DNA of 64,000 nt from Tubulanus polymorphus. Taxonomy: Eukaryota; Animalia; Nemertea. Under the pieces are notes generated by a model. It ran no database searches. It was not told where the DNA came from and saw only the letters and a list, made by a program, of their open reading frames with translations. Each line of letters begins with the position of its first letter. The stretch's first letter is position 1. This document shows, one piece after another, positions 1 through 53,326 of the stretch. Position numbers and translations under genes: made by a program. The DNA lies in assembly GCF_964204645.1 (NCBI RefSeq), contig NC_134033.1, forward strand, positions 12,594,655 through 12,658,654, written 5' to 3'.

Positions 1-3000
1 GTCACTACCACGAGAACGACAGAAACAGTCTACGGCAGCGATGATGTTCCTGATGGTGGAAACCAAATCGACGGATTTGGCCAGAGGCTATCAACTGACA
101 CAATACCGTACGACATAAGACAGGGCCCCGGAGAAAGACCACAGGGAGATGTTAAGAACCGGGATAGATTTGGTAATGTAGTCACTACCACGAGAACGAC
201 GGAAACAGACTACGGTAGAGACGATGCTCCTGACAGCAGAAGCCAAAACGATAGATTTGGCGAGAGGGCATCCACTGACACAATACCATACGGCATGGGA
301 GAGGAACCCGGAGATATCGATGGAAGACCACAGGGAGATAACAAAGAACTTGATAGATTTGGTAATGTAGTCACTACCACGAGAAAAACGGAAACAGTCT
401 ACGGCAGAGATGATGCTCCTGACAGCGGAAGCCAAACAGACGAATTTGACCAGAGGGCAACCTCAGGTGCAATACCGTATGGCATAGGGCAGGAAGCTAT
501 GGACACCGATGAGAGACAACAGGGAGGTACCAGGGACCTCGATAGATTTGGTAATGTAGTCACTACCACGAGAACGACAGAAACAGTCTACGGCAGCGAT
601 GAAGTTCCTGATGGTGGAAACCAAATCGACGGATTTGGCAAGAGGGTATCCACTGACACAATACCATACGACATTGGACAAGGCCCCGGAGAAAGATCAC
701 AGGGAGATGTTAAGGACCGGGATAGATTTGGTAATGTAGTCACTACCACGAGAACGACAGAAACAGTCTACGGTAGAGACGATGCTCCTGACAGCAGAAG
801 CCAAAACGATAGATTTGGCCAGAGGGCATCCACTGACACAATACCGTACGGCATGGGAGAGGGACCCGGAGATATCGATGGAAGACCACAGGGAGACAAC
901 AAAGAACTTGATAGATTTGGTAATGTAGTCACTACCACGAGAAAAACAGAAACAGTCTACGGCAGAGATGATGCTCCTGACAGCGGAAGCCAAACAGACG
1001 AATTTGACCAGAGGGCAACCTCAGGTGCAATACCCTATGGCATAGGGCAGGAAGCTATGGACACCGATGAGAGACGACAGGGAGGTACCAGAGACCTCGA
1101 TAGATTTGGTAATGTAGTTACTTCCACGAGAACGACAGAAACAGTCTACGGCAGCGATTATGTTCCTGATGGTGGAAGCCAAAACGATAGATTTGGCCAG
1201 AGGGTATCAACTGACACAATACCGTACGACGAAGGACAGGGCCCCGGAGAAAGACCACAGGGAGATGTTAAGGACCGGGATAGATTTGGTAATGTAGTCA
1301 CTACCACAAAAACAACAGAAACAGTCTACGGTAGAGACCCAAGAGTGACGGCAGAGCAGACATATAGCGTACTTACAGAACCTGAAACTGATAGATTTGG
1401 TAATATCATTACAACTACTCAACGTTCAATGACTACCTACGGAAGAGAGGAAGGCAAAGGGACAGATGAAGAATCTGGAAACGAACGAGACAAATTTGGA
1501 AATCTTGTTGTAACAACTAGAACTACTGAAACGATGTACGGTGGAGTTATATATCCCGATGAAACTGGTGGATTTGGCCAAACGACATCTACACAAGAAC
1601 CAATCGCCATGCATGGTATCAGCCAGGAGCCCAAAGATGATGCGACGGGTGAAATGAAACTGGGGAATCTAGAAGAGCCTAAAACCGATCGATTTGGTAA
1701 TATTATCACGACTACTACAACATCAAAAGCAATTTATAGTGATGGAACTTCTGCAAGAGAAAGGAAGGACCAGGAAGTGCCTGAGCGCGATCGATTTGGA
1801 AATGTTATACCAACTAGGAAAATCGATGGTTACGGGTACATTGAAAATGACGAAAATGATCAACAAGCACAGCCTGAGACTGATAGATTCGGCAATATTG
1901 TCACAAATCAAAAAATGTCCAGAAATGATAATGACGATAATAGTCCTGAAGAAGATGTAAAGGGCCGGGAGCAACCTGAAACTGTACGGGATAGATTTGG
2001 AAATGTTATCACGACAACAACAACGAAGACAATATCTGATCGGGGAAATCTGTCCACGGATATTGATCGATTTGGTCAAATTATCACGACAACGACCTCA
2101 ACATCTGAAACTACATATGACACTGAAGAACTTGAAGGGAAAGGAAGCGATCTTGGGCAACCAGGAACCAGAACCTTACGAAGCGACGATCAAGAACAGG
2201 AGCCTGAGCGGGAAAGACAGGAACAAACCGAAACTGAACGAGATAGATTTGGGAATATCATCACGACAACTAGAACTACAGACACAGTGTACGGCCGTGA
2301 AACGAGTCCCGAAAAAGAGAGGGAAGATACCGGTGGGTATGGCCGGAAACCTGATACAACTAGAACATTTGGTTCCACGTACGGTCCAGGTCAGGAACCT
2401 GAAGAAACTGTGGTTGAAGAGAAGAGACAAGTGGAATTCACAGAACCGGAAACTGATAGATTTGGTAATGTTATCACGACTACGCAAACTACACTAAGAA
2501 CCTATGGCATAGATCAAGACGTCGACGATCGTCAACAGGAAATATCTGAAACTGAAAAAGATAAATTCGGTCCAACGACAACTAGAACAACCCGTACTGT
2601 GGGTTCTATGTACGGCGGCGGTCAGGAACTTGATAAAACAGAACCTGAAACCGATAGATTTGGTAATGTTGCCACCGATACGCACCCATCTAGAAAAGAT
2701 GAACAACCAGGTCAAACTGAAATAGACAGATTTGGAAACGTGGCCCCCACTGGAACTACAGAAGCGGTTTACAGTGAGGAGAATAGCCAAGACGATCCAG
2801 GAAGGTTTGGCCAAACGACAACTAGAACAACCCGCACAGTGACTTCCATTGGCCAGGAACCCGATGAAACCGTTACTGATAAGACGCAAGATGTTCTAGC
2901 AAAACCTGAAGCTGATAGATTTGGTAATGTTATCACAGCTACAAGAACGACTAAAACAATTTATGATCGTGAAATCAGTCCTGAAACTGATAGAGAAGAA

Positions 3001-6000
3001 TGGGACCAACCTGAAGTAGACAGGTTTGGAAATGTAGTAACTAAGGCGAAAGCTACAGATGCAGTATATGGTAAAGAAAAGAGCTCAGATGAACCAGAAA
3101 GGTTTGGCCAAACTACAACAAGAACAGCTCGCACTGTCAGTTCTATGTATGGGATTGGTCAAGAACCTGAAGAGAGTGTGACAGCAGACGATGATCCAGT
3201 AGATATCACGGAATCTGAAACTGATCGATTCGGCAATGTGGTGACAATTACGACTTCCAAAACGGCTTATGGTGCTCGAACTTCAGGAGAAATTGAAGAG
3301 AATCAACCAGAGATTGAACGTGATAGATTTGAAAATGTAATAACAACTACACAAACAAGAACTGTATATGGACGAGAAAAGATGCCTGGAAATGAAGAAC
3401 AGGAACAACCTGAAACTCAGGGAGATAGATTTGGTCAGACGACAACGAGAACAACCCGTACTGTGAGTTCCGTGTATGGTATCGGTCAGGAACCCGAAGG
3501 AGCGGTTTATGACGAAAGAACAGAAGAGGAGTTCAAAGGACCAGAAACCGATAGATTTGGTAATCTTCTGACAACGACTCGAACTTCCCGAACTGTTTAT
3601 GATGATGTGATCCCTGCAAGCGACAGAGACCTCGAACAACCCGTAACCGAACGAGATCGATTTGGAAATATGGTTACGACGACCCAAACCTCCCGAACCT
3701 TGTCTGATCGAGAAGAAACACCTGACGGCTATGAAGATGATCCCCAACATTTATTAGGAACTGAACGTGATAGATTTGGAAACGTTGTTACAACAACAAG
3801 ATCTTTGGAAACAGTTTCTAATCACGGAAAGTTCTCTGGAGAGACAGACTCATCTGGCTTAACGACTAGAACAACCCGCACCGTTAATTCAGCGTACGGT
3901 ATTGATGGACAAGAACCTGAAGAAACAGGTACTGAGGAAATGACACAAGGAGATCTGACAGAAACTCAAATCGATAGATTTGGCAATGTTATTACGACTA
4001 CTATAACTTCTAAAACAATTTATGGTGCAGGAGTCCCTGAAGAAGATATAGTCCATGGGCAACCTGACAATGGCCGAGAAGGGTCTAGAAATGTTATCAC
4101 AACTATTAGAACTGCAAGGACTACCATTGGGGGAGAACAGATTTCTAAAAATGACGAAGCTTCACAAGATGACCAAGGATCTGAAGCAGACAGACTCGTT
4201 CATACTAAGAGTAAAACTATCTATGGCCGAGATGAGACTCCTGAAAATGAAGGACCCGAAACTGAAGGAAATAGACTTGGTCAAACTACAACAATGACAA
4301 CTCGCACTGTAAGTTCCATGTACGGTATCGACCAGGAACCTGAGGACACCGTCACCGAGGAGAAGAGAAACGAGCAGCTTACAGAACCTGAAACTGACAG
4401 GTTTGGTAATATTGTCACGACTACCACAACTGCAAGAACGTTTTATGATGTCCAAACGCCCGATGATGATAAAAACGAAGATAAACCGGAAACTGTACGA
4501 ATTAAATTTGGAAACGTGATAACCACAACTAAAACTATGCAGTTAGAACCTGATAAAGAAAATTCTCCCGACGAATTCGGTGAAAGGATAAGTGCAGTTT
4601 CCAAGGAACCAAAAGAAACTGTAGATAACGAAACTACACAAGAGGAATTCACAGAACCCGAAACCGATAGATTCGGTAGAATTGTTATCGAGACACCCGA
4701 GGCACCCGAGGATGACACAACGAGATCAAGAACAACTATCTATGGACGGGAAAGGGCTCCTGACAATGATGAACCGACACATCCAGAAACTGAGGTAGAT
4801 CGATTCGGCCAAACCACAACGAGAACAACCCGTACTGTGAGTTCGATGTATGGTATTGGTCAGGGACCTGGAGAAACTATTCCTGGGGAAATCACACAAG
4901 AGCAGCTCAGAGAACCTGAGACTGATAGATTCGGTAATATGATCACTACTACTACTACTTCCACAACTGTGTTCGGTGCTGAGATTCCTGAAGATGAAAG
5001 GGACCAGTTGCAACTTGAACCAGGGAGGGGTCGGTTTGGTACTGGGAGTTCTATGTACGGCGTTGGTCGGGAACCTGACGAAAACGTTACTAAGGAATGG
5101 ACAGAAAAACAGCTTACAGAACCTGAAACTGATAGATTCGGTAACGTTATTACTAGTACGAGAACGTCGAGAACGGTTTATGATTCTGAAACTCCTGATG
5201 ATGTTGGAGACCAAGAGCAACCTGTAACCAAACTGGACAGATTTGGAAATGTTATAACGACGACCAAAACTACACATGGTCGAGAGCAAACTCCTGAACT
5301 CGATGAACGAGAAGAATCCGAGACTGAGAGAGATCGATTTGGCCAAACAACAACTAGAACAACCCGCACTGTGAGTTCCATGTATGGTATTGGTCGGGAA
5401 CCTGAAGAAGGTGTTGCCGAGGGAAATGAATTTACAGAACCTGAAACAGATAGATTCGGCAACGTCATTACGTCCACAATTGTTGCAAATCCAGATGAAA
5501 CCGACAAGCCTCAACCTAGGATTGACCGTGATAGATTTGGAAATGTTAGAACAACTACACACACTACCAGAACTGTCTATGGACGAGAAAAGACGCCTGA
5601 AAATGATGAACAGGAACAAACTGAAACTGAGGGAGGTAGATTTGGTCAGTCGACAACGAGAACAACCCGTACTGTGAGTTCCATGTATGGTGTCGGTCAG
5701 GAACCTGAAGGTGACCAGGCGCAACCTGTAACTGAACGGGACAGATCTGGAAATGTAATCACGACAACAAGAACTACCCATGGCCGAGAACAGACCCCTG
5801 AAAATGATGAACAGGGACAAGCTAAAACTGATTCAGATCGATTTGGCCAAACGACAACCAGAACAATCCGTACTGTGAGTTCATTGTATGGCATCGGTCG
5901 AGAACCTGATGAAACTGTCACTGAGGAAAAGAGTCAAGAGGTTCTAGCAGAACCTGGAGGGACTGACAGGTTCGGTAATATAATAACTACTACAAGTTCC

Positions 6001-8439
6001 AGAACTGACTATGGTGTTGAATCCCAGGGAGAAACGGATGGGACCCAACCTGAGATTGAACGAGATAGATTTGGAAATGTAATAACAACTACCAGAACTA
6101 CAAGAACTATCTATAGCCGAGAAGAGACGCCTGAAAATGATGAACAGGAGAAACCCACAACAGAACGAGATCGATTTGGCCAAACAACAACAAAGACAAC
6201 CCGCACTGTGAATTCTATGTATGGTATTGGTCAAGAACCAGGGGAAACTTTGGCTGAAGGAACACACGGGGATCTCACAGAACCAGAAACTGATAGCTTT
6301 GGTAACATAATCACTACTAGAACTTCGAGAACGGTTTATGGTTATGAAACTCCTGAAGGTGGCCAGGAGCAACCTGTAACTGAACGAGACAGGTTTGGAA
6401 ATGTAATTACGACAACCAGAACTACCCATGGTCGAGAGCAAACTCTTGAAAATGATGGACGTAAACAACCTGAAAGTGATAGAGATCGATTTGGCCAAAC
6501 CACAACTAGAACAACCCGCGCTGTGAGTTCCATGTATGGTATTGGTCAGCAACCTGGAGAAACCGTTACTGGGGAAAAGATACACGAGGTTCTAACAGAA
6601 CCTGAAACTGATCGTTTTGGTAATATAATCGCTACCACAACTTCCAGAACTGTATATGGTGATCAACACCAGGAAGAAACTGGCAAGGATCAACCCGAGA
6701 TTGAACGGGATAGATTTGGCAATGTAATAACAACTACCAGAACCACAAGAACTATTTATGGAGAACAGACCCCTGAAAATGATGATCAGGAAAAACCTGA
6801 AACTGATAGAGATGGATTTGGCCAAACAACAACAAGGACAGCACGTGATGTGAGTTCTATGTATGGTATCGGTCAGGGAAGTGAAGAAACCGTTACTGAG
6901 GAAATTACACAAGAACAGTCCACCGAACCTGAAACTGATAGATTCGGAAATATTGTCACTACCACTAGAACTTCGAGATCTGTTTACGGTTTTGAGGCTC
7001 CTGACGAAGAAAGGGACCAGATGCAACCTGAAGATGAAAGGGATAGATTTGGTCAAACGACGACTACCACAACCCGCACTGTGAGTTCAATGTATGGTGT
7101 CGGTCAGGGACCTGAAGAAACCGTTACTGAGGAAATTACACAAGAGCAGCCCACCGAACCTGAAACTGATAGATTCGGAAATATTGTCACAACCACTAGA
7201 ACTTCGAGAACTGTTTACGGTTTTGAGGCTCCTGACGAAGAAAGGGACCAGATGCAACCTGAAGATGAAAGGGATAGATTTGGTCAAACAACGACTACCA
7301 CAACCCGCACTGTGAATTCCATGTATGGTGTGGGTCGGGAACCTGAAGAAAGTGTAACCGAGGAAAAGACGCAAGAGGAGTTTTCAGAACCTGAAACTGA
7401 TAGACCGGAGCGTGATAGATTTGGAAATATTGTCACAACCACTAAAGTTTCGTTAACAGGAGGTGATGAACCTGATGTAGACAGGGTTGGTAGAGCTACA
7501 ACAAGGACCACGCAGGAAATATACGGTATCACCGGAAATAAGCCGGATGTTAGCCAAACTGAACAAACTGTGATAGTTAAAACCGAACGATTTGGAAACA
7601 AAATCACCTCTGGTGGGGAGATAGACATAACAGAGTCCGATAGACGGCGCTATGGTGGCTTCGGAGAAAGTAGCACTGACGCCGATATTGCTTCCTCAAC
7701 GACGACCGTGACTACGAAAAGAATGTATGGCCTGGATGACAACGACAATGATGGCGATAAAGAGGGATATTCGGAAACGATAACTGAAACGCGCTACGGA
7801 ATAGAACAATCCGAAGTACCGAGTGAGGTTGTCGACGATGATAGATGGCGCAGTGATAGTGGCTGGCGTGATCGTAGAACGATCACTGAAACGTGGAAGA
7901 CAGAAGAGGGTGATGGTTCCAGACCGGACGACCTAGTAGCCAAAGATGCGGGAGATGATGAAAAATGGAAAACCGATAGAGGCTGGAGTGATACGCGCAC
8001 AGTCACAGAACGATGGAAAACAGGAACTGGTGATGATAGTGGTGATGGTGGTGTTGATGAGAGGAAGGAGGGTGGTGACGATGAGAAATGGAGAAGTGAT
8101 GGAGGATGGAGTGACACTCGTACGGTCACGGAGAGATGGAGAACAAGAGAGGCCGGTGATGGTGACGACGCCTCTGGTGGAGGTGCGGATTCCCGACGTG
8201 AGACTCGTCGTCTGGGTAGATCAGACTCGCAGACGGATAGAGATCGCGATGATCACGCCATCACGAAACGTCATTCATTCATAAAAGCCGGATTCGACGG
8301 CGGCGCTCAGCGACTAGAGATCCAAGTTCGAGCGCCCGAAGACAGTGCTTCACTGCAACAAGACTGGGGTGAAGAGAAGATGATTTCGCTCGGTGAACGT
8401 GAAGAAATGGAATTAGCTGAATCAGAACAAGTTTTACAG
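1..8439 (+). CDS. Giant internal coding exon (starts before the window) of a DRFG-repeat / plectin-repeat protein
   Basis: Frame 1 is open from base 1 (GTC ACT ACC = VTT). It encodes many ETDRFGN(V/I)ITTT..T(V/I)YG repeats. Donor CAG|GTACGC at 8439/8440 is phase 0; the ORF tail after 8439 is intron read-through. Confidence 0.88.
163..1340 (+). repeat. Near-identical 558-bp (186-aa) higher-order coding tandem repeat
   Basis: Equivalent GATAGATTTGGTAATGTAG positions at 163, 721 and 1279; each unit has three subunits of about 60-63 aa. Confidence 0.9.
6850..7330 (+). repeat. 231-bp (77-aa) coding tandem duplication
   Basis: Units start at about 6850 and 7081, with a partial third at 7312; nearly identical at DNA level. 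Confidence 0.85.
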
Positions 8440-8493
8440 GTACGCATTTCTATTTGTATGGGCAATGATAAAGTGAACATTCACAATATTTAG

Positions 8494-8592
8494 CGGGAAG
8501 TCAGGCCGTGGGTTCGAAACCCATACATTACCATAGTGTCCCCGGGCAAGACATTTAACCTTCAGTGCCTCTCCTCACCCAACTATAGAAAT
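8494..8592 (+). mobile_element. tRNA-derived SINE fragment (CORE-like)
   Basis: B-box GGTTCGAAACCC followed by GTGTCCCCGGGCAAGACATTTAACC...CACCC; a related copy lies at about 29790-29900. Confidence 0.6.
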
Positions 8593-8658
8593 TAAACTAT
8601 TCGAATTACTATCATTATCATTAATAACTTTCCTATTTTTCTTCTCTTTTTGAATTAG

Positions 8659-9513
8659 TCGAAGGGAGAGGTTACGCAAACGTTCTTTGTCGAGGCGGTA
8701 ATCGATCCGAGAAACGACGAAGCCATTTCGTTAGACGACGCTCGAGCGCTCGGCATAATAGACTCCGCTCATGGGCAATACGTGAATATCCAAACTGGGC
8801 GTCGAATCCCGATCCCTCAAGCGATGAGCGAACAGAAAATCATCATTACCTACGAAACGAAAAGCGAAACTGAAGAACCGTCGAAATCGTACGGAATCAT
8901 CAAGATCAAACACTTGCACGCCCGACCGGCGTCGAAATATAAAATACATCACGTGATACACCCGGTCACCAATCGAGTGCTGACGTTATCTGAGGCAACA
9001 GCGCAGAATGTCGTCGACGAAGCTTTGACTACTTATCGAAACCCGAAATCCGGCAACGAGATACCGCTTTCCGAGGCAATCGAGAAAATGAAGGTATTGG
9101 CAGACGAGCAAGACGAAAACGAACAGCCGAAGACGCCGCTTTCTCCCGGGCCGGACTACGAACCGGACAGCGAGAAGACTTACGTGGTAAGCGCTGTCGT
9201 CGATCGGTTACAAAAGCGACGCGTTTCGTTCCGAGAAGCGGCGAATATCGGACTACTGGATCAACTGAACGGAACTTTCAAGGACAACGTAACCGGAGAA
9301 TCGATGTTCATCGGCGACGCCATACATAAGGGTTTCCTGAAAGTTCGCGAACTCGACTCGAAAGAAACGTTGGATATCGATCCTACCAACCACGTCGTCG
9401 TATCGCGGGTTAACATGTTGAAAAAGAAGATTCTCAACCCTTTGAAAGCGATTCGCGCTTTCCGGTCGTCGAGACTGTCGACAACGCACGAAGACGAAGA
9501 ATCTCACGCTTAA
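8659..9513 (+). CDS. Terminal exon with plectin/plakin-type repeats, C-terminus of the giant repeat protein
   Basis: Polypyrimidine tract plus TTAG acceptor at 8658, in frame with ORF 8782-9513. Motifs VIDPRNDEAISLDDARALGIID, VIHPVTNRVLTLSEA and FKDNVTGESMFIGDAIHKGFL resemble plectin repeats. AATAAA at about 10801. Confidence 0.8.
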   Translation, partial: SKGEVTQTFFVEAVIDPRNDEAISLDDARALGIIDSAHGQYVNIQTGRRIPIPQAMSEQKIIITYETKSETEEPSKSYGIIKIKHLHARPASKYKIHHVIHPVTNRVLTLSEATAQNVVDEALTTYRNPKSGNEIPLSEAIEKMKVLADEQDENEQPKTPLSPGPDYEPDSEKTYVVSAVVDRLQKRRVSFREAANIGLLDQLNGTFKDNVTGESMFIGDAIHKGFLKVRELDSKETLDIDPTNHVVVSRVNMLKKKILNPLKAIRAFRSSRLSTTHEDEESHA

Positions 9514-11605
9514 TGAATAAGGAAAAAAATACTTTGTAAATTAAAAAGTTTATGATTAAGTTGGGGAATATGAATCTCGACACTTACTTGGGCTTAATGT
9601 CTACTACATCGGTTACTGTTTCTGCATCAGACCCCATACCCCTCCTTTATATCATTTTAAATAACGGCCAGGTCGAATGATCAGCAGGTCCAATTTTCTT
9701 TTAATCTATTACGGTAAATTAATGTTCAATGACCACTGACGATTGAATACTTAACCGTTTTATCTGCCCCACGGCGCTTGCGTGGTTATCCAGTGACCGG
9801 CCGTGGCTTCGACAGTAGCCTCTACTAGATTGCATGTATTTATATTTTTTCCTGAGCAGTCACAATTTTATGCACAATAGTTATTCCCAAGTAATTAAAA
9901 GAAACATGTAATTTCCGATTGCTTTTGTCACTACGTACACTCACTGCCTTATTAATTAGACTTCTTGTCATTAATCTCAATTTTGATGGATTCACCCCCT
10001 GTGAATTCTACAAACCATCATTTAGCCCTATTAATGCGATAAATGCATATTATACATTTATAAAGATTAGAAATCTAGGAACAAATAGATTTTCCCTCGA
10101 ACTATCAGAGTGCCAAATTCAAGTCTTTGAAATAGTGTATATTTACTGCTATGAATATTATTCATAATATACTCGTGCCAAATTTAATCCGAATGTGCTA
10201 AAATAACATATACGAATCGTTCACAATTTGTGAATCGTAATAGCCTTAAGCTGCTTGACTTAACAAGTTTATTCTCTTTTAAATCTATTACATTCAAAAA
10301 TGTGTTAATAACGTGATTTAATTCGGCGTCACTGTGTATCAGTGTCAAATCGAAGTCGATTATTTCAATGTACTGTGCTAAGTATCGCAATGCAACGCTT
10401 GAAATGCGTCCTTTAAACGATAGACATTGATTTTGATCAACATTTCTGAAAGTTAAACAGAGATCGGTGTATTTTCACTGGGACGATTGGGAAATTGCAC
10501 CGAATTCAGGGAATACGGAATCACCCACCGTGCTTGTGTTACGATCGTTTTGTTTTCTTTTTGTAAATAGATATTTCGAGTCGAATACGTAGATATTAAT
10601 TGATAGACGTTAAGTTTTATTTAGAAACGCGAATTTTTTTGCTTTAAAATCTGTTCGATCGTAAGAAATGTTTTCTTTGTTTCATATGATTCAAAATCAT
10701 TATAGAATATAAATCACTATGCAAACTGTATTTGTGTATTGTAAGACACATGTATAATCATTTTTTAAACTTGTTGGTATTTTGCGCTGTTCAGCTTATG
10801 AATAAAATGCGTTGTATAGAAGAATATGGAGGTTATTATTTCTCCTTTGTTAGTATTTCACCCCGCTATATCGGAGTACTCATTCTGACCTCAATGTACT
10901 CAGGTTCTTGTATTTCGATGCCCCAAACGGGCACAGATAGATCAGTTGCACAATTATGACCTGGGTCCAACGCGATATTAGCGTTTTAATAAGCAGAGAA
11001 TGAAGACTACTTTGGATCCAAGTCACACGACTCCATGCAGACGTGCCACTTCTATCATACGAATGAAGCAAATCTTTGTTTACCAGTGACATCCTTCTCG
11101 TTCTTTATAACTTCATTAATTCTTGGCAGTCCTCAACAAAATACCACAGGAAACAACAAGATCAAGAATGTATTCATTTATCACATGTATTGAATATACT
11201 TCATATTCATATTTTATTTCACATATCTGAAAAAATACTTGATTTTGGGAAGGGTTTTTATCACAGAGCTTATGTTGATTGTTTACCGAGGTTGTGGACA
11301 GTTATTAATGCGATAAAAAAAACTTAACAGGCTCCCTTACTAACGTCCCTTTGTGAAAACAATACGCCTCATGGACGGTTCCAAATTTCCCCAGGGTTAC
11401 ACCATGGATTCTTAAACAAATTCGTTTTCAGGGTCCATATAGTTAGATTTAGTGCCAAGTCAATATATATATATAGGGCTAGGATGTGTATTGCGGCATA
11501 ACCAAACTTCCACAGTTCTGATGTCCGATTCTTAGTCAAATTTGAATCGAACACTATGTGACCAGATCTTGGTGGACTTCGTTAAGGAGTTCTGTGACTT
11601 TGTTT

Positions 11606-13158
11606 TCATAGTTTAACTGTGGCTAGTAAAGTCGCTATGAACCCGATCATGGCTCCGATTCCGCTGATAATCCATAACATACTCGTATCCGTATTACTTT
11701 TAAAGCTGTTCACGATATCTTCCTGAAATGAGGGTAGAAGAAAGAAATAAGCCATTTATCAAACGAAAATAAAGTGTCGATAATTGATTTTTCTAAATAA
11801 ACTCTGCTTCCACTAACAGGTGAATGATGGTTCAAAGTTAAAAAAGAAAATATCAATAGATTCTTGACAATTAAAGTGACTTCCTTTCTTTGATCAACAA
11901 GTCGACAAGCTGCCAAGTCCTCCTCCCAATCCGTGGAAAACTTCCCAGATTGTCCCCATTATATCCAACGTTACTTTGCAATAATTTCAGTATACATGAA
12001 TACTGCACAGGACAAACAATATATCCTAGCAGAAATAACTTACCCATCCGCCTTGAATGGAGATCCAATTGGCTAAATTTCTATTTACGAATACTCCGAA
12101 ATGTTCTATCAGTTTGTGAACGTATTCAGGGTGACCTTGTTGCACGCAGTCGACAGCTATGCCACCTATTAGCGCGAACAAAGCGACGATTTTACCCCAG
12201 TGAATTTCGCCTTTCATCATGTATTCGCCGATCGATACGAACGTCTTTCTCACTATCTCCTCGTTGCTCATCGTAACGTTGATTTGACGCGAAATGCTTC
12301 GGTAAAGTTCGGGATAGATTCGCTCGAGTTCGGAGCCGATCAGCTGCACTTGATTCGAAACGGCCGAACATTCGTGAACTTCCGGCGCCGGTGGCAGTTT
12401 ACTGCTGTAATATAAACCGGAACGTTTAATCCGATTCAGGATGTAATCCCGGACTAGCTGTTTCGATTCTTCGGTTATCTGGTCCAAATCGGGAGTATCG
12501 ACACTGCTCAGATTTAAACCTGCAAAATACAAAAATCAGCATCCGTACGTGAAAATATGGTATCGCCTTTTCGGTCATACATCATGAATCGTAACCCCTT
12601 TTGCTATCACATTTCTTCTTATTGGGTTAACGCAAAAATCAAACGTTCAAAACAAATTGTAAAGAAACAAACCACTGACAAACTTGTAATTTCACCGGAA
12701 ATATTTTTTTCAATGCCAAAATTAAGTCTCTAAAACCATTTTTAAAACTTCACCACACAACCTGCAGGATAGTATTTAAACGGTCATCATAAAGCGGGGG
12801 GGGGGGGCACTTTTTGAAAGGGTCATAACCTAAGCGTATTCTTTGTACGATTGCCTTTGAAAATAGTTCCGACCCTTTATGAAACGACAATATACTTAAA
12901 AATACTCGACTACAGATATATAGTCTTGTCACCCCGGAAACTGTCGGTAGTCTCCGTATTGGTATTTGTACCTGTTATCACCGTCTGCGATAATTTTCGA
13001 GAGAGACGTTTTACGTTCGTCCTAGTTCGGGAATACGACGGAACCATGTCGGCAAGACTCGGCACTCTCCGCAAACGGATCGGTTTCAGCACGGCTATCG
13101 TCTCAACTGACTTGAATACGTCATCTTCGTTATCATCATAGATACGGTTTGCCGCCAT
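11606..13158 (-). CDS. BOK: Bcl-2-related ovarian killer-like protein; exons 13158-12972, 12519-12044, 11722-11606 (259 aa)
   Basis: BH3 IGSELE, BH1 HWGKIVALFALIGGIAVDCVQQG (the WGK form is typical of BOK), BH2 WISIQGGW and a C-terminal TM (MLWIISGIGAMIGFIATLLA). Splice sites are GT-AG and phases sum to 780 nt. Confidence 0.9.
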
Positions 13159-17851: not shown

Positions 17852-18826
17852 ATGTTTAGCATGACGAGGAAAGTGCGGTTGCCGGGTGTGTTGATTACAG
17901 CGCTGGTTCTAGTACTCATCATCGTTTTAATGATGTTCGGCCGAGGCTATTTAGACGCCGATGCCCTGGCGATTGTTTCCGAAAAAGAAGCCGTCATCGA
18001 AAGGCCGCTACCAGGCCGCGGACTGTTGAAGGAATACGTCACCGATAAAATGAAATTCGTCTCGCAAAACGTGTCGTACACGTTCGAGCCGGGTTTGAGT
18101 AGAGTCGAGAGAATGAAATACATTTCTCTGATAAAAACCATTCACGGTCTGCTGGTCGACAACCGTATCGAATACATGATACATTTCGGGACTCTGTTAG
18201 GCGCGTATCGCCATCACGGGTTCGTACCGTGGGACGACGATTTCGACGTGCTCGTAAAACAGTCCGAAAAACTTCGTTTGGTAGATATATTCAAGCGGGC
18301 GCCCACGGTGAGAGCCTACTATATGCAGGACGAACAGTTCTTCAGGGTATACATACGCGACGAGCCTGTCGTGAATCGTCGGCCTTATTCGTGGCCTTTC
18401 GTCGATGTTTTCATGTACGAAGAATTCGGGGATATCATCCACGACATCTCGAAAGTACAAAATCATTACTGGGCGGATAAGAAATTGATTTTCCCCTTGG
18501 TCGAAGTGCCGTTCGAAGAACTGTGGTTACCGGCGCCGAAATATATGTCGAAAGTACTGGATCTTATGTTTACCATGTCTAACTATAACGATTATTGCGC
18601 CCGAGGCGGCGAGAATCATAAAACGGGCGAAAATCGACATAAAATCAGGTTACTGTGCCACGAAGTGAAACCGCGTCACCCGTTTGTCATGCGCACCTGT
18701 CTAAACGACACCGTCACCGAATCTCTCGTGGTCGGCGATGTAGTTTTGCACAAGTGGAAATATTTGAAAAAGTCGAACGTAGTTCCGCAGGACGATTCGA
18801 TGGTTTGCGATGATGACGATGACTAA
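17852..18826 (+). CDS. LicD-family (fukutin/FKRP-related) phosphotransferase, type II membrane protein, intronless CDS
   Basis: N-terminal TM (VLITALVLVLIIVLMMF); LicD motifs GTLLGAYRHHGFVPWDDDFDV, PFVDVF and IFPLVEVPFEELWLPAP. Start could be 17852 or 17861. Confidence 0.9.
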   Translation: MFSMTRKVRLPGVLITALVLVLIIVLMMFGRGYLDADALAIVSEKEAVIERPLPGRGLLKEYVTDKMKFVSQNVSYTFEPGLSRVERMKYISLIKTIHGLLVDNRIEYMIHFGTLLGAYRHHGFVPWDDDFDVLVKQSEKLRLVDIFKRAPTVRAYYMQDEQFFRVYIRDEPVVNRRPYSWPFVDVFMYEEFGDIIHDISKVQNHYWADKKLIFPLVEVPFEELWLPAPKYMSKVLDLMFTMSNYNDYCARGGENHKTGENRHKIRLLCHEVKPRHPFVMRTCLNDTVTESLVVGDVVLHKWKYLKKSNVVPQDDSMVCDDDDD

Positions 18827-25469: not shown

Positions 25470-49019
<23,550 letters not shown>

Positions 49020-52141: not shown

Positions 52142-53092
52142 TCATTCGAACCAAATACGACAGCGGATTCTCATACAGAAATATTCACGAATTTCCCTCC
52201 CCAATAAAAGATATATGTAGAAATTAACGACATAATTACACAATTCGAACTGAGCGGAAATGTCTAAAAGAATATGTGTCTGTCCCGGTGCGACTGGTAT
52301 GAATACGTTAATAGTGTTTGGAATTGTAAATATCGCAAATGCAAGTGAAACTGTTACAAGCATTATTGTTGTACGTTTTGATTTTGTAGTTTTCTGATCG
52401 GACGAAACCATTTTTGAACCTCCAAATAACTGTACCATTATTAAAGAATTTGATATTATAATCACCGATAAAGGCAGAACAAAAACGTACATAACATACG
52501 TCATAGAAAGTAGAAATTGATCAAACGGCTCGTTGTAACATCTAAAGATATCCACAAAATTCGTTTTCGCTGAATGATGAATGCCAATTACCAATACGTT
52601 CATTACAAAAATGATAACGATAGCGCATCTGGCGAATTTAGGTGTACATATCAAACGGGATTTGAACGGGAAGAGAACAACTCCCGCACGTTCTAGAGAT
52701 ATCGCTACTATCAACCAGGCACTACAAGCACCCATAGAATTCAACAGAGATTCATAAAATTGACAACTGATCAGCGAATTCACTAAGAATATCGGCCCGG
52801 TTTCTAGATGCAATAGAGCAAACTGTAATACGGGCATTAGTGTATAGCCGATACAGAAAACCAAGTCACTGAAAGCCAAAGCGATCAGATAGTTAGCGTA
52901 AGATAAACCGCGGAATCTGCGACTCATCATTACCAGAAAGGAAGCCGAATTCCCAAATGCTCCTAATAAGAACATGATAAGCAGAATGACCATTGACAGT
53001 AAGCGGTAGATTCCAGACTTGTTCATCAGAGACATAAGAACGATGTTACTGCTATAAGCAGGAAGAATCTGCATCTCTTGGGTAGAATTCAT
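52142..53092 (-). CDS. Intronless class A (rhodopsin-like) GPCR, FMRFamide-receptor-like or chemoreceptor-like
   Basis: Seven hydrophobic segments; TM1 GN, TM2 LAFSD, TM3 ISLERAG, TM5 LP, TM6 IP, TM7 NYVVNFYIY. Likely start MNSTQE (NST sequon); the ORF is open up to 53191. Confidence 0.88.
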   Translation of the reverse strand: MNSTQEMQILPAYSSNIVLMSLMNKSGIYRLLSMVILLIMFLLGAFGNSASFLVMMSRRFRGLSYANYLIALAFSDLVFCIGYTLMPVLQFALLHLETGPIFLVNSLISCQFYESLLNSMGACSAWLIVAISLERAGVVLFPFKSRLICTPKFARCAIVIIFVMNVLVIGIHHSAKTNFVDIFRCYNEPFDQFLLSMTYVMYVFVLPLSVIIISNSLIMVQLFGGSKMVSSDQKTTKSKRTTIMLVTVSLAFAIFTIPNTINVFIPVAPGQTHILLDISAQFELCNYVVNFYIYLLLGREIREYFCMRIRCRIWFE

Positions 53093-53326
53093 TAAAGTTG
53101 TAGCAAATCTAGATTCCGTACAGCGAGTTCCGAGTCTAATAAATGTATAGTCATATATGATAAAGGTAGACCCTATACGTGTATTCATCATTTTATTTGT
53201 AAACGAGATGAAAATTATGGTTTACTGCGAGGTTAAAATCAATTCTCACAAATCTAACACAATCAACTCAGATTTTGTCAAATGTTTTATTCTGTAGAAT
53301 TTAACTGAATCATTTAATGCCACCAA

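Follow-up and report, generated by a model that had tools for sequence, protein, structure and literature searches.

A giant exon of DRFG repeats spliced to a plakin-repeat tail: a predicted gene of the ribbon worm Tubulanus polymorphus

The window, a stretch of 64,000 nucleotides from Tubulanus polymorphus, opens inside a predicted gene, here called the DRFG gene after its repeated motif. It runs as far as 9513, and the neighbour that follows, on the opposite strand, belongs to the Bcl-2 family. On the 5' side lies a Ras-family gene, and the true first exons would fall in the 27 kb downstream of it. The features of the DRFG gene in the window are collected in Table 1. Positions 1-8439 are the 3'-terminal three quarters of a single giant coding exon, which starts near -2444 in window coordinates and amounts to ∼10.9 kb and 3,627 amino acids in all. 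The same frame has no stop back to -2555, giving 3,665 sense codons in a row in a genome of about 40 to 45% GC. The full protein is predicted to be ∼4,170 residues long, and an automated database gene model, P0001, has 4,169; for the 5' end, that model is the only source. Searches were run exon by exon or on P0001, and only one P0001 query spanned the junction between the giant exon and the terminal exon.

Table 1. Features of the DRFG gene in the window
Feature	Position	Strand	Basis
Giant coding exon, window part	1..8439	+	Open frame 1, 2,813 codons; equals P0001 residues 1073-3885
Sub-array 1: DRFGN units in alternation with DRFGQ units, each of about 29-34 aa	1..1342	+	Tandem Repeats Finder periods of 189 and 369 nt, 77% matches; motif spacing
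Irregular, further diverged DRFG units	1343..2430	+	Motif list, profile matches
Sub-array 2: higher-order repeats of three units (about 106-109 aa) or two units (77 aa)	2431..7479	+	Tandem Repeats Finder periods of 327 and 231 nt; alignment
Three Trp-rich units, ∼41 aa, DDEKW..D.GW.D.RT.TE.W.T	7834..8145	+	Trp positions, sequence
Charged linker running up to the splice donor	8146..8439	+	Translation
GT-AG intron, 219 nt, phase 0	8440..8658	+	Sequence
Dispersed-repeat (SINE-like) fragment in the intron, 87 nt	8495-8581		At least 40 genomic copies, 79-87% identity
Last coding exon, 284 aa and a TAA stop	8659..9513	+	Pfam, BLASTP, alignment
ATTAAA, candidate polyadenylation signal, 27 nt past the stop	9540..9545	+	Sequence read

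The giant exon encodes no cysteine and is rich in T (16.3%), E (10.4%), G (10.3%), D (10.1%), and R (8.8%). Its net charge is -315, with a charged-residue fraction of 0.32 and a mean hydropathy of -1.2, and no transmembrane- or signal-like hydrophobic segment was found (the maximum 19-residue Kyte-Doolittle mean was 1.25). Frame and composition thus bear out a preliminary description of the locus, which had reported a single exon of >8.4 kb encoding >2800 residues of Cys-free, acidic, Thr-rich sequence.

Each repeat unit consists of an acidic linker, the core D-R-F-G-(N/Q), a stretch of the form [VI][VI]-T-T-T-(R/T)-T-T-x-T-[VI]-Y-G, and an acidic/Pro linker, with F and Y regularly placed at unit positions +2 and +16. 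The whole exon contains 59 exact DRFG motifs (44 DRFGN and 13 DRFGQ), or 66 if the motif is written D[RKE]FG. When a profile built from 60 units was applied, 76 units scored at least 5 bits in the whole exon and 63 in the window; the same profile found no unit in 20 shuffles of the protein. The earlier count of 70 to 80 motifs therefore suits the whole exon, and it was slightly high for the window part. Higher-order periods of 189 and 369 nt (1-1337) and of 327 and 231 nt (5786-7404) were detected by Tandem Repeats Finder. Sub-array 1 has higher-order repeats of 63, 123, and 186 aa and extends upstream beyond the window; each repeat of sub-array 2 reads TEPETDRFGN..., then ERDRFGNVITTTRTT..., then ERDRFGQTTTRTTRTVSSMYGIGQEPEE. 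The Trp-rich units downstream may be diverged DRFG units. Across the invariant D-R-F-G cores, R is encoded by AGA (40), CGA (10), AGG (4), and CGT (3), and G by GGT (27), GGA (15), GGC (14), and GGG (1); the linkers between the cores vary. Retention of D-R-F-G through so many synonymous codons shows constraint on the core at the protein level.

The intron that follows has the donor CAG/GTACGC at 8439/8440, and a polypyrimidine tract precedes the AG/TCG acceptor at 8658/8659. P0001, an independent automated gene model, splices at exactly 8439/8659. With a canonical phase-0 GT-AG intron and the same junction in P0001, the in-frame splice to a plectin-like exon proposed in the preliminary description appears sound. 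ARAGORN found no tRNA in the dispersed repeat of the intron.

In the terminal exon, three double plakin-repeat modules span residues 4-233 (nt 8668-9357), and a short basic tail comes after them. A Pfam search of 8659-9513, as had been suggested, gave a Plectin match above threshold (PF00681; E 1.1e-12, 48 bits against a cut-off of 20.5). The exon also matched the desmoplakin C-terminal subdomain (1lm5; E 1.9e-4) and, by BLASTP, invertebrate plakin-repeat arrays (E down to 6e-24), with which all three modules align colinearly. These matches establish the terminal exon as a true plakin-repeat module. Plakin-repeat domains hold intermediate filaments via an electropositive groove (PMC4782060). 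The net charge of the DRFG tail is about -5, so such a filament-binding groove is not evident from its sequence. Plakin-repeat tails are cytoplasmic in every case known to us; a secreted or mucin-like reading of the protein was rejected, given this tail and the lack of a signal- or transmembrane-like segment.

Three paralogues in the genome, at C9:5.78, C9:10.09, and C9:5.55 Mb, share the overall design of the DRFG gene, but their central regions have no sequence relation to the DRFG array. At C9:5.78 Mb, an acidic ORF, of which at least 1,724 aa were read (a 2,147-aa open frame is listed), runs without an intron into a three-module tail; this tail is 29% identical to the DRFG tail (E 1e-23), with all three modules colinear, including the SYG[IL]I spacer. 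The second locus has a 5,431-aa acidic ORF that continues directly into the start of the plakin repeats, and the third is a further gene with a giant acidic exon and a plakin-repeat tail. The single continuous frames at C9:5.78 and C9:10.09 Mb support the view that giant exon and tail belong to one protein. There is no second copy of the DRFG array in the genome, nor were paralogues of the array, the N-terminus, the pre-tail linker, or the Trp-rich units found anywhere in it. The spectraplakin-like locus of the genome lies on another contig (C2:23.14 Mb), where SH3_10 is accompanied by plakin-repeat ORFs of 4,320 and 4,750 aa.

Whether the gene is a plakin, spectraplakin, or ankyrin isoform had been left as a question, and the upstream exons show no spectraplakin or ankyrin signal. 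Among the features of the plakin family, the plakin-repeat domain is present (PF00681, 1lm5, and the alignment of residues 4-233). The N-terminal plakin domain (spectrin repeats SR3-SR9 with an embedded SH3) was not found, and neither was a central coiled-coil rod, the centre being rich in T, G, D, E, R, and P. No signal for a plakin domain, SH3_10, spectrin, CH, or ANK was obtained in the upstream exons; PF17902 (SH3_10) occurs at three loci across the genome, the nearest 2.8 Mb away. Searching the 40 kb upstream by tblastn with six plakin-repeat proteins, some of them spectraplakin-like, gave nothing, and Pfam gave no match to the model N-terminus or the upstream ORFs, where small unrecognised exons may remain. 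A PDB sequence search for a plakin/SH3 head was equally negative, and a low-confidence AlphaFold fold of the N-terminus retrieved generic helical bundles only in Foldseek. CH, spectrin, EF-hand, and GAS2/GAR domains were found neither in the P0001 pieces nor in the 40 kb upstream, and P0001 has no Pfam domain of the ANK-repeat or ZU5-UPA-death type. Because these searches for plakin-domain, SH3, spectrin, CH, and ANK parts found none, we conclude that the gene is an isoform of neither a spectraplakin nor an ankyrin. Likeness of the repeat to the obscurin-binding segment of ankyrins, also suggested earlier, could not be reproduced: ankyrins are absent from the HMMER matches (1.84e9 proteins) and from the PDB unit-profile matches, and the ankyrin string quoted in its support was not found in a literature search. 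On the sequences compared here, the DRFG gene is a gene in its own right, built to a "giant acidic exon + plakin-repeat tail" plan that has expanded locally. Its repeat is real and new, but the protein probably represents a lineage-specific version of a cytoskeletal linker of known type.

The repeat had been thought to belong to no named family, and this was upheld; it has no detectable relative among 1.84 billion representative proteins. An HMMER scan of that set with 1,200 aa of repeats returned the protein itself and two bacterial proteins only. The latter (P0014 and P0015, Ig/FN3-type repeat proteins) were rejected as homologues, the common part being only xDRFG(N/E)xxT. A word-index search of protein sequences, queried with residues 1200-2400 of the repeat region and limited to proteins of 0.55-1.75x the query length, returned only self. 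An ESM Atlas feature search yielded no usable match for 861 aa of repeat sequence, and a literature search on DRFGN produced nothing relevant. Pfam matches of the array to Pox_TAA1 and Cas_Csa5 are motif or composition artefacts, in which no stretch passes alone or the score is below cut-off. For SAM_HAT_C (PF20257), zero stretches pass alone and the best reach profile positions 3-32 of 84; the unit-profile search of PDB sequences matched the SAM hydrolase 2f4n (E 0.06) over 10 residues. The SAM hydrolase C-terminal domain and the bacterial Ig-like repeats resemble the array in the short string DRFGN[ILV][IV]T, but only 10-30 of 84 model positions are matched. The summed SAM_HAT_C E-values arise because the motif is repeated, and the resemblance is not homology. 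T. polymorphus is a palaeonemertean ribbon worm, and the DRFG array is an orphan of this single species.

The giant acidic region is predicted to be disordered. AlphaFold2 modeling of three higher-order units (332 residues) gave a mean pLDDT of 29 with no residue above 50, which, from a 10-row internal-repeat alignment, is a weak test of disorder. No helix was predicted in this segment; the only strand pairs are 2-6 residues long and mostly flank DRFG motifs, all with pLDDT of <50. The earlier proposal that each motif is a β-hairpin docking element is not borne out by these values. The strict five-residue core and the β-prone T/V/I/Y stretch would also suit elements that fold on binding.

Our preferred reading, to which we give about an even chance, is that the locus is a single-copy gene for a cytoplasmic plakin-repeat protein whose disordered, multivalent array serves as a tail-anchored tether. 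Such a protein would begin with a short N-terminus, mostly helical and without a recognisable domain, and continue into the 3,627-aa region, the Trp-rich units, and a plakin-repeat C-terminus on its own exon, four parts in all. The tail would dock the protein on intermediate filaments or on another cytoskeletal or junctional structure, and the polyanionic array could reach out from it, either as a brush or as a long and flexible tether. The evenly spaced F/Y/R/T-rich units may serve as multivalent short linear motifs for partner binding or for weak, reversible self-association. During evolution, the usual plakin head and coiled-coil rod would have been swapped for a lineage-specific repeat array. 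We put forward as a doubtful elaboration that the DRFG unit might be a new selected module, either a hairpin that folds on binding or a "sticker" that attaches reversibly. Its ∼76 filament-anchored copies would then make up a cytoskeletal element of a kind not described before, a multivalent docking rail or an elastic, energy-dissipating linker, within a family of tail-anchored giant disordered proteins expanded in ribbon worms.

Several other explanations were weighed against the tail-anchored tether. The DRFG units could fold on binding as β-hairpins onto a folded partner, for example of the Ig type, in the manner of ankyrin and obscurin, making the protein a filament-tied docking scaffold. 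An invariant core under protein-level selection would agree with this, as would the short paired strands that flank several motifs in the low-confidence AlphaFold model and the occurrence of DRFGN[IV][IV]T in folded SAM hydrolases (2f4n; SAM_HAT_C positions 3-32) and of VLDRFGNLVT in the bacterial Ig-like repeats of P0014. HMMER searches, however, found the unit in no ankyrin or other eukaryotic protein, and pLDDT is <50 throughout; we regard docking by hairpins as unlikely. We think it rather unlikely that the array is instead a sticker-and-spacer or elastic domain, with FG, YG, and Arg about 15-20 residues apart as in FG nucleoporins or PEVK, forming an energy-dissipating linker for a stretchable worm. 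The regular F and Y positions, the predicted disorder, the 3,627-aa length, and the sub-threshold Nucleoporin_FG matches are consistent with such a domain, but the net charge of -315 works against homotypic condensation, and membership in Pfam Nucleoporin_FG was rejected at a best score of 24 bits against a cut-off of 32.2. To our knowledge, an invariant D and R beside FG is no feature of FG nucleoporins.

The two remaining alternatives concern the gene itself. The giant exon and the plakin exon might not, or not always, make one protein, if the retained intron gave a tail-less DRFG protein or if the tail belonged to another transcript. At 219 nt the intron is a whole number of codons long, with an in-frame stop at 8491-8493, 17 codons past 8439. 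Set against this are the consensus-like donor, the polypyrimidine acceptor, phase 0 and the junction shared with P0001, the paralogues that carry giant ORF and tail in one unbroken frame, and the lack of a start context or upstream exon of a separate tail gene within the 219 nt, so that two separate products seem improbable. Lastly, the array could be a non-functional runaway expansion, or the gene could be decaying, with no selected function for the repeats. Its orphan status and its recent tandem duplications (77-88% DNA matches) might be read in this way, but 3,665 uninterrupted sense codons, a motif kept despite extensive synonymous change, and intact splice sites, stop, and candidate poly(A) signal make it very improbable.

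If the gene is expressed as modeled, a plakin-repeat tail can be paired with centres that differ greatly from the head and rod of classical plakins; in this case the centre is a 3,600-residue polyanionic, predicted-disordered array of an orphan motif on which selection is clear. Judging by the paralogues on the same chromosome, giant disordered proteins anchored by such tails seem to have radiated within the lineage of this very extensible animal. Such a radiation would be a natural system for studying giant disordered linkers in tissue mechanics and plakin-repeat binding in spiralians.

The conventional plakins (envoplakin, desmoplakin, plectin, and BPAG1e) share with the DRFG protein the C-terminal plakin-repeat module and the layout of head, very long centre, and tail, with the centre on one giant exon and the tail on the last exon; the rods of plectin and desmoplakin are single large exons. 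They have a plakin domain with SH3_10 and a coiled-coil rod, whereas neither was found in the DRFG protein, which carries an acidic, predicted-disordered array of ∼76 units; its tail consists of three double-repeat modules, compared with a vertebrate 4.5-repeat domain. By sequence, the nearest plakin-repeat arrays are those of spectraplakin isoforms (Drosophila Shot, C. elegans VAB-10A, and MACF1b/dystonin), and giant exons are found in both. The DRFG tail matches the C2:23.14 Mb locus of its own genome at 36% and a Solemya velum protein with SH3_10, spectrin, EF-hand, and GAS2 domains at E 6e-24, but the DRFG gene stands at a separate locus and shows no CH, spectrin, EF-hand, or GAS2 domain in P0001 or in the 40 kb upstream. 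Plakin-repeat isoforms of Drosophila Shot are found at adherens junctions (PMC2173965), and invertebrate plakin repeats therefore need not bind intermediate filaments. In the way they may work, and in that respect only, AHNAK, titin PEVK, and FG nucleoporins are also comparable, being long single-exon arrays of short units with spaced aromatic or charged residues that are predicted to be non-globular; the DRFG array is unrelated to them in sequence, is much more acidic, and ends in a plakin-repeat tail.

The reading frame of the giant exon is uninterrupted for 2,813 codons from the start of the window (positions 1 to 8439, frame 1) and, in 40 kb of upstream sequence, remains open as far as position -2555; the exon starts near -2444, preceded by a pyrimidine-rich stretch and AG, and is therefore ~10.9 kb long, encoding 3,627 residues. 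An automated model of the gene on the same contig, P0001 (4,169 residues), was already present in the protein database; its residue 1073 is the first codon of the window, and it is spliced exactly at 8439|8659. In this model a giant repeat exon is joined to a short terminal tail; single exons, or P0001 itself, served as queries in the searches below. The gene is bounded, since Ras-family exons on the same strand lie 5′ of it and a Bcl-2 family gene on the opposite strand lies 3′.

Features of the DRFG gene, its surroundings, and one related locus (negative positions lie upstream of the window)
Feature	Position	Strand	Basis or remarks
Ras-family small GTPase exons (Rab-like by eye)	L012:7163-7372, L011:2672-2914 (upstream pieces); window -32837 to -27086 (~-32.8 to -27.1 kb)	+	Pfam PF00071, E 7.5e-7
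P0001 N-terminal part, 258 aa	small exons, -4393 to -2686		P0001 model
P0001 residues 259-3885	giant exon		P0001 model
P0001 residues 3886-4169	terminal exon, 8659-9513		P0001 model
Sub-array 1: alternating N- and Q-type units; higher-order repeats of 63/123/186 aa	1-1342, extends upstream	+	TRF periods 189, 369 nt
Sub-array 2: tri-units (106-109 aa) or bi-units (77 aa)	~2431-7479	+	TRF periods 327, 231 nt
Three Trp-rich units, ~41 aa each (DDEKW..D.GW.D.RT.TE.W.T)	7834-8145	+	translation
Intron, 219 nt, phase 0	8440-8658	+	donor CAG|GTACGC; acceptor polypyrimidine tract and AG
Dispersed repeat, 87 nt, inside the intron	8495-8581		at least 40 copies, 79-87% identity, many contigs
Stop codon TAA	9511-9513	+	sequence
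ATTAAA 3′ of TAA	9540-9545	+	sequence
Bcl-2 family domain, single ORF, directly downstream of the DRFG gene	12029-12532	-	Pfam PF00452, E 8e-24
LicD/fukutin-type nucleotidyltransferase ORF, intronless	17858-18826	+	Pfam PF04991
Scattered exons resembling ABCC-type transporter	~27600-45000	-	one ABC_tran match, 24 bits vs threshold 25, just below
661-aa ORF: ~20 tandem 10-aa units, then non-repetitive C-terminal half	41115-43100	+	
Rhodopsin-family GPCR, intronless	52145-53191	-	Pfam 7tm_1, E 1e-18
Giant acidic low-complexity ORF, 1,259 aa	G000:C9:5550003-5553779	+	

Elsewhere in the window, the LicD-family ORF is 34% identical to its nearest non-self relatives and 32% identical to a paralogue on the same chromosome. 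The 661-aa ORF gave no Pfam match, and an ORF at 27644-28162 with the 10-aa repeat PSQTICC(V/L)Y(L/S) is probably intronic.

The preliminary description of a Cys-free, acidic, Thr-rich giant exon holds: it contains no Cys, carries a net charge of -315, and consists of 16.3% T, 10.4% E, 10.3% G, 10.1% D, and 8.8% R. DRFG occurs 59 times in it (44 as DRFGN, 13 as DRFGQ) and D[RKE]FG 66 times, against ~0.1 DRFG expected from composition by our own arithmetic. A profile built on an alignment of 60 units, applied to the protein with a minimum score of 5 bits, detected 76 units, against none in 20 shuffled versions; the 70 to 80 motifs previously estimated by eye for the exon in the window thus fit the whole protein, but only 63 of the 76 lie within the window. 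Each unit runs from an acidic linker through an invariant D-R-F-G, N or Q, [VI][VI]-T-T-T, and R/T-T-T/S-x-T-[VI]-Y-G to an acidic or Pro linker. The Trp-rich units, with three Trp apiece in a protein otherwise almost free of Trp, may be diverged DRFG units. The invariant Arg is encoded by AGA (40), CGA (10), AGG (4), and CGT (3), the invariant Gly by GGT (27), GGA (15), GGC (14), and GGG (1), and the Thr positions use all four codons. So many synonymous codons at invariant residues indicate that the copies are old and that purifying selection acts on the peptide motif, making a non-functional expansion very improbable.

As far as sequence searches reach, the repeat is an orphan, in keeping with the earlier view that it belongs to no named family. 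P0001 was the sole match in a word-index protein search, and a HMMER scan of 1.84 billion representative proteins, with 1,200 residues of the array as query, added two weak, coincidental matches (E 4e-8 and 6e-4), both bacterial Ig/FN3-type repeat proteins sharing only strings of the VLDRFGNLVT or SDRFGES type. The ESM Atlas gave no usable match, and within the genome the repeat was confined to this locus; the N terminus and pre-tail linker had no paralogues there either. Pfam SAM_HAT_C owed its large summed scores to repetition of a 10- to 30-position match, no stretch passing alone, and in a PDB profile search a SAM hydrolase shared the same coincidence over 10 residues, IDRFGNIIT (E 0.06). 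The suggested likeness to the obscurin-binding segment of ankyrins was not borne out: ankyrins appeared in none of the searches, and the quoted ankyrin string was not found in a literature search.

The terminal exon encodes plakin repeats, as first proposed (Pfam Plectin, E 1.1e-12, 48 bits vs a cut-off of 20.5). It matched the desmoplakin C-terminal subdomain 1lm5 (E 1.9e-4), its residues 4 to 233 aligned with invertebrate plakin-repeat arrays (best E 6e-24), and the tail alignment resolved three double-repeat modules. The gene appears to have no recognizable head, which, with no ankyrin match, speaks against a plakin, spectraplakin, or ankyrin isoform. Pfam found no domain in the P0001 N terminus or upstream ORFs, a PDB sequence search returned nothing, and six plakin-repeat proteins, some spectraplakin-like, had no tblastn match in the 40 kb upstream. 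Single-sequence AlphaFold predicted four helices in residues 1 to 262 (pLDDT 50-77), matching generic helical bundles only. Pfam SH3_10 matched three genomic loci, none closer than 2.8 Mb; the spectraplakin-like locus, at C2:23.14 Mb, combines SH3_10 with plakin-repeat ORFs of 4,320 and 4,750 aa. A truncated plakin/SH3 head for the DRFG gene thus finds no support.

The genome of this palaeonemertean contains many plakin-repeat loci, several of which pair a giant acidic exon with a terminal tail, so that the DRFG gene belongs to a local expansion of this design; its central array is unique among them. The locus at C9:5.78 Mb (G000:C9:5779001-5784174, minus strand) has an acidic ORF, read over at least 1,724 aa in a 2,147-aa open frame, that continues unbroken into a tail whose three modules are colinear with those of the DRFG gene (29% identity, E 1e-23). 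At C9:10.09 Mb (G000:C9:10080033-10096325, plus strand), a 5,431-aa acidic ORF with its own ~27-aa repeat (SRDQTTDKSIELTPGDTQTED...) leads directly into a plakin-repeat start. Separately, a 14,113-aa open frame at G000:C1:13347533-13379164 (plus strand) holds at least 20 near-identical 1,503-nt plectin-repeat units, a huge and very young array.

The intron before the tail has a length divisible by three and an in-frame stop at 8491-8493; its retention would give a DRFG protein lacking the tail. The dispersed repeat within it resembles a fragment of a tRNA-derived SINE, but ARAGORN called no tRNA there. Giant exon and tail are predicted to form one protein, with indirect support from the paralogues whose acidic ORF continues unbroken into the tail, and we consider separate or tail-less products improbable.

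AlphaFold2, given three higher-order units and a shallow alignment of internal repeats, and hence a weak test, returned a mean pLDDT of 29 with no residue above 50. Because of this low pLDDT, a charged-residue fraction of 0.32, and a mean hydropathy of -1.2, the array is best regarded as an intrinsically disordered region with a weak propensity for hairpins. The β-hairpin proposed for each motif survives only in the 2- to 6-residue strand pairs, mostly flanking DRFG motifs, that were the sole structure in the model. These pairs are what a specific docking array of units folding on binding could build on, but with no residue above pLDDT 50 we regard such an array as unlikely. A cohesive or elastic sticker-spacer domain is a somewhat more doubtful proposal. 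In the favoured reading, the polyanionic array would project as a long tether or brush, and its F/Y/R/T units, which recur at regular intervals, would serve as short multivalent motifs, either binding a partner or forming self-contacts that are weak and reversible. A tail-anchored polyanionic tether or brush bearing multivalent motifs is, taken as a whole, the reading we adopt, with about even confidence.

In such a tether, the tail would hold the protein on intermediate filaments, to which the plakin-repeat domains of vertebrates bind by way of an electropositive groove (PMC4782060). Alternatively, it might attach to junctional structures, to which the plakin-repeat isoforms of Drosophila Shot are anchored (PMC2173965).
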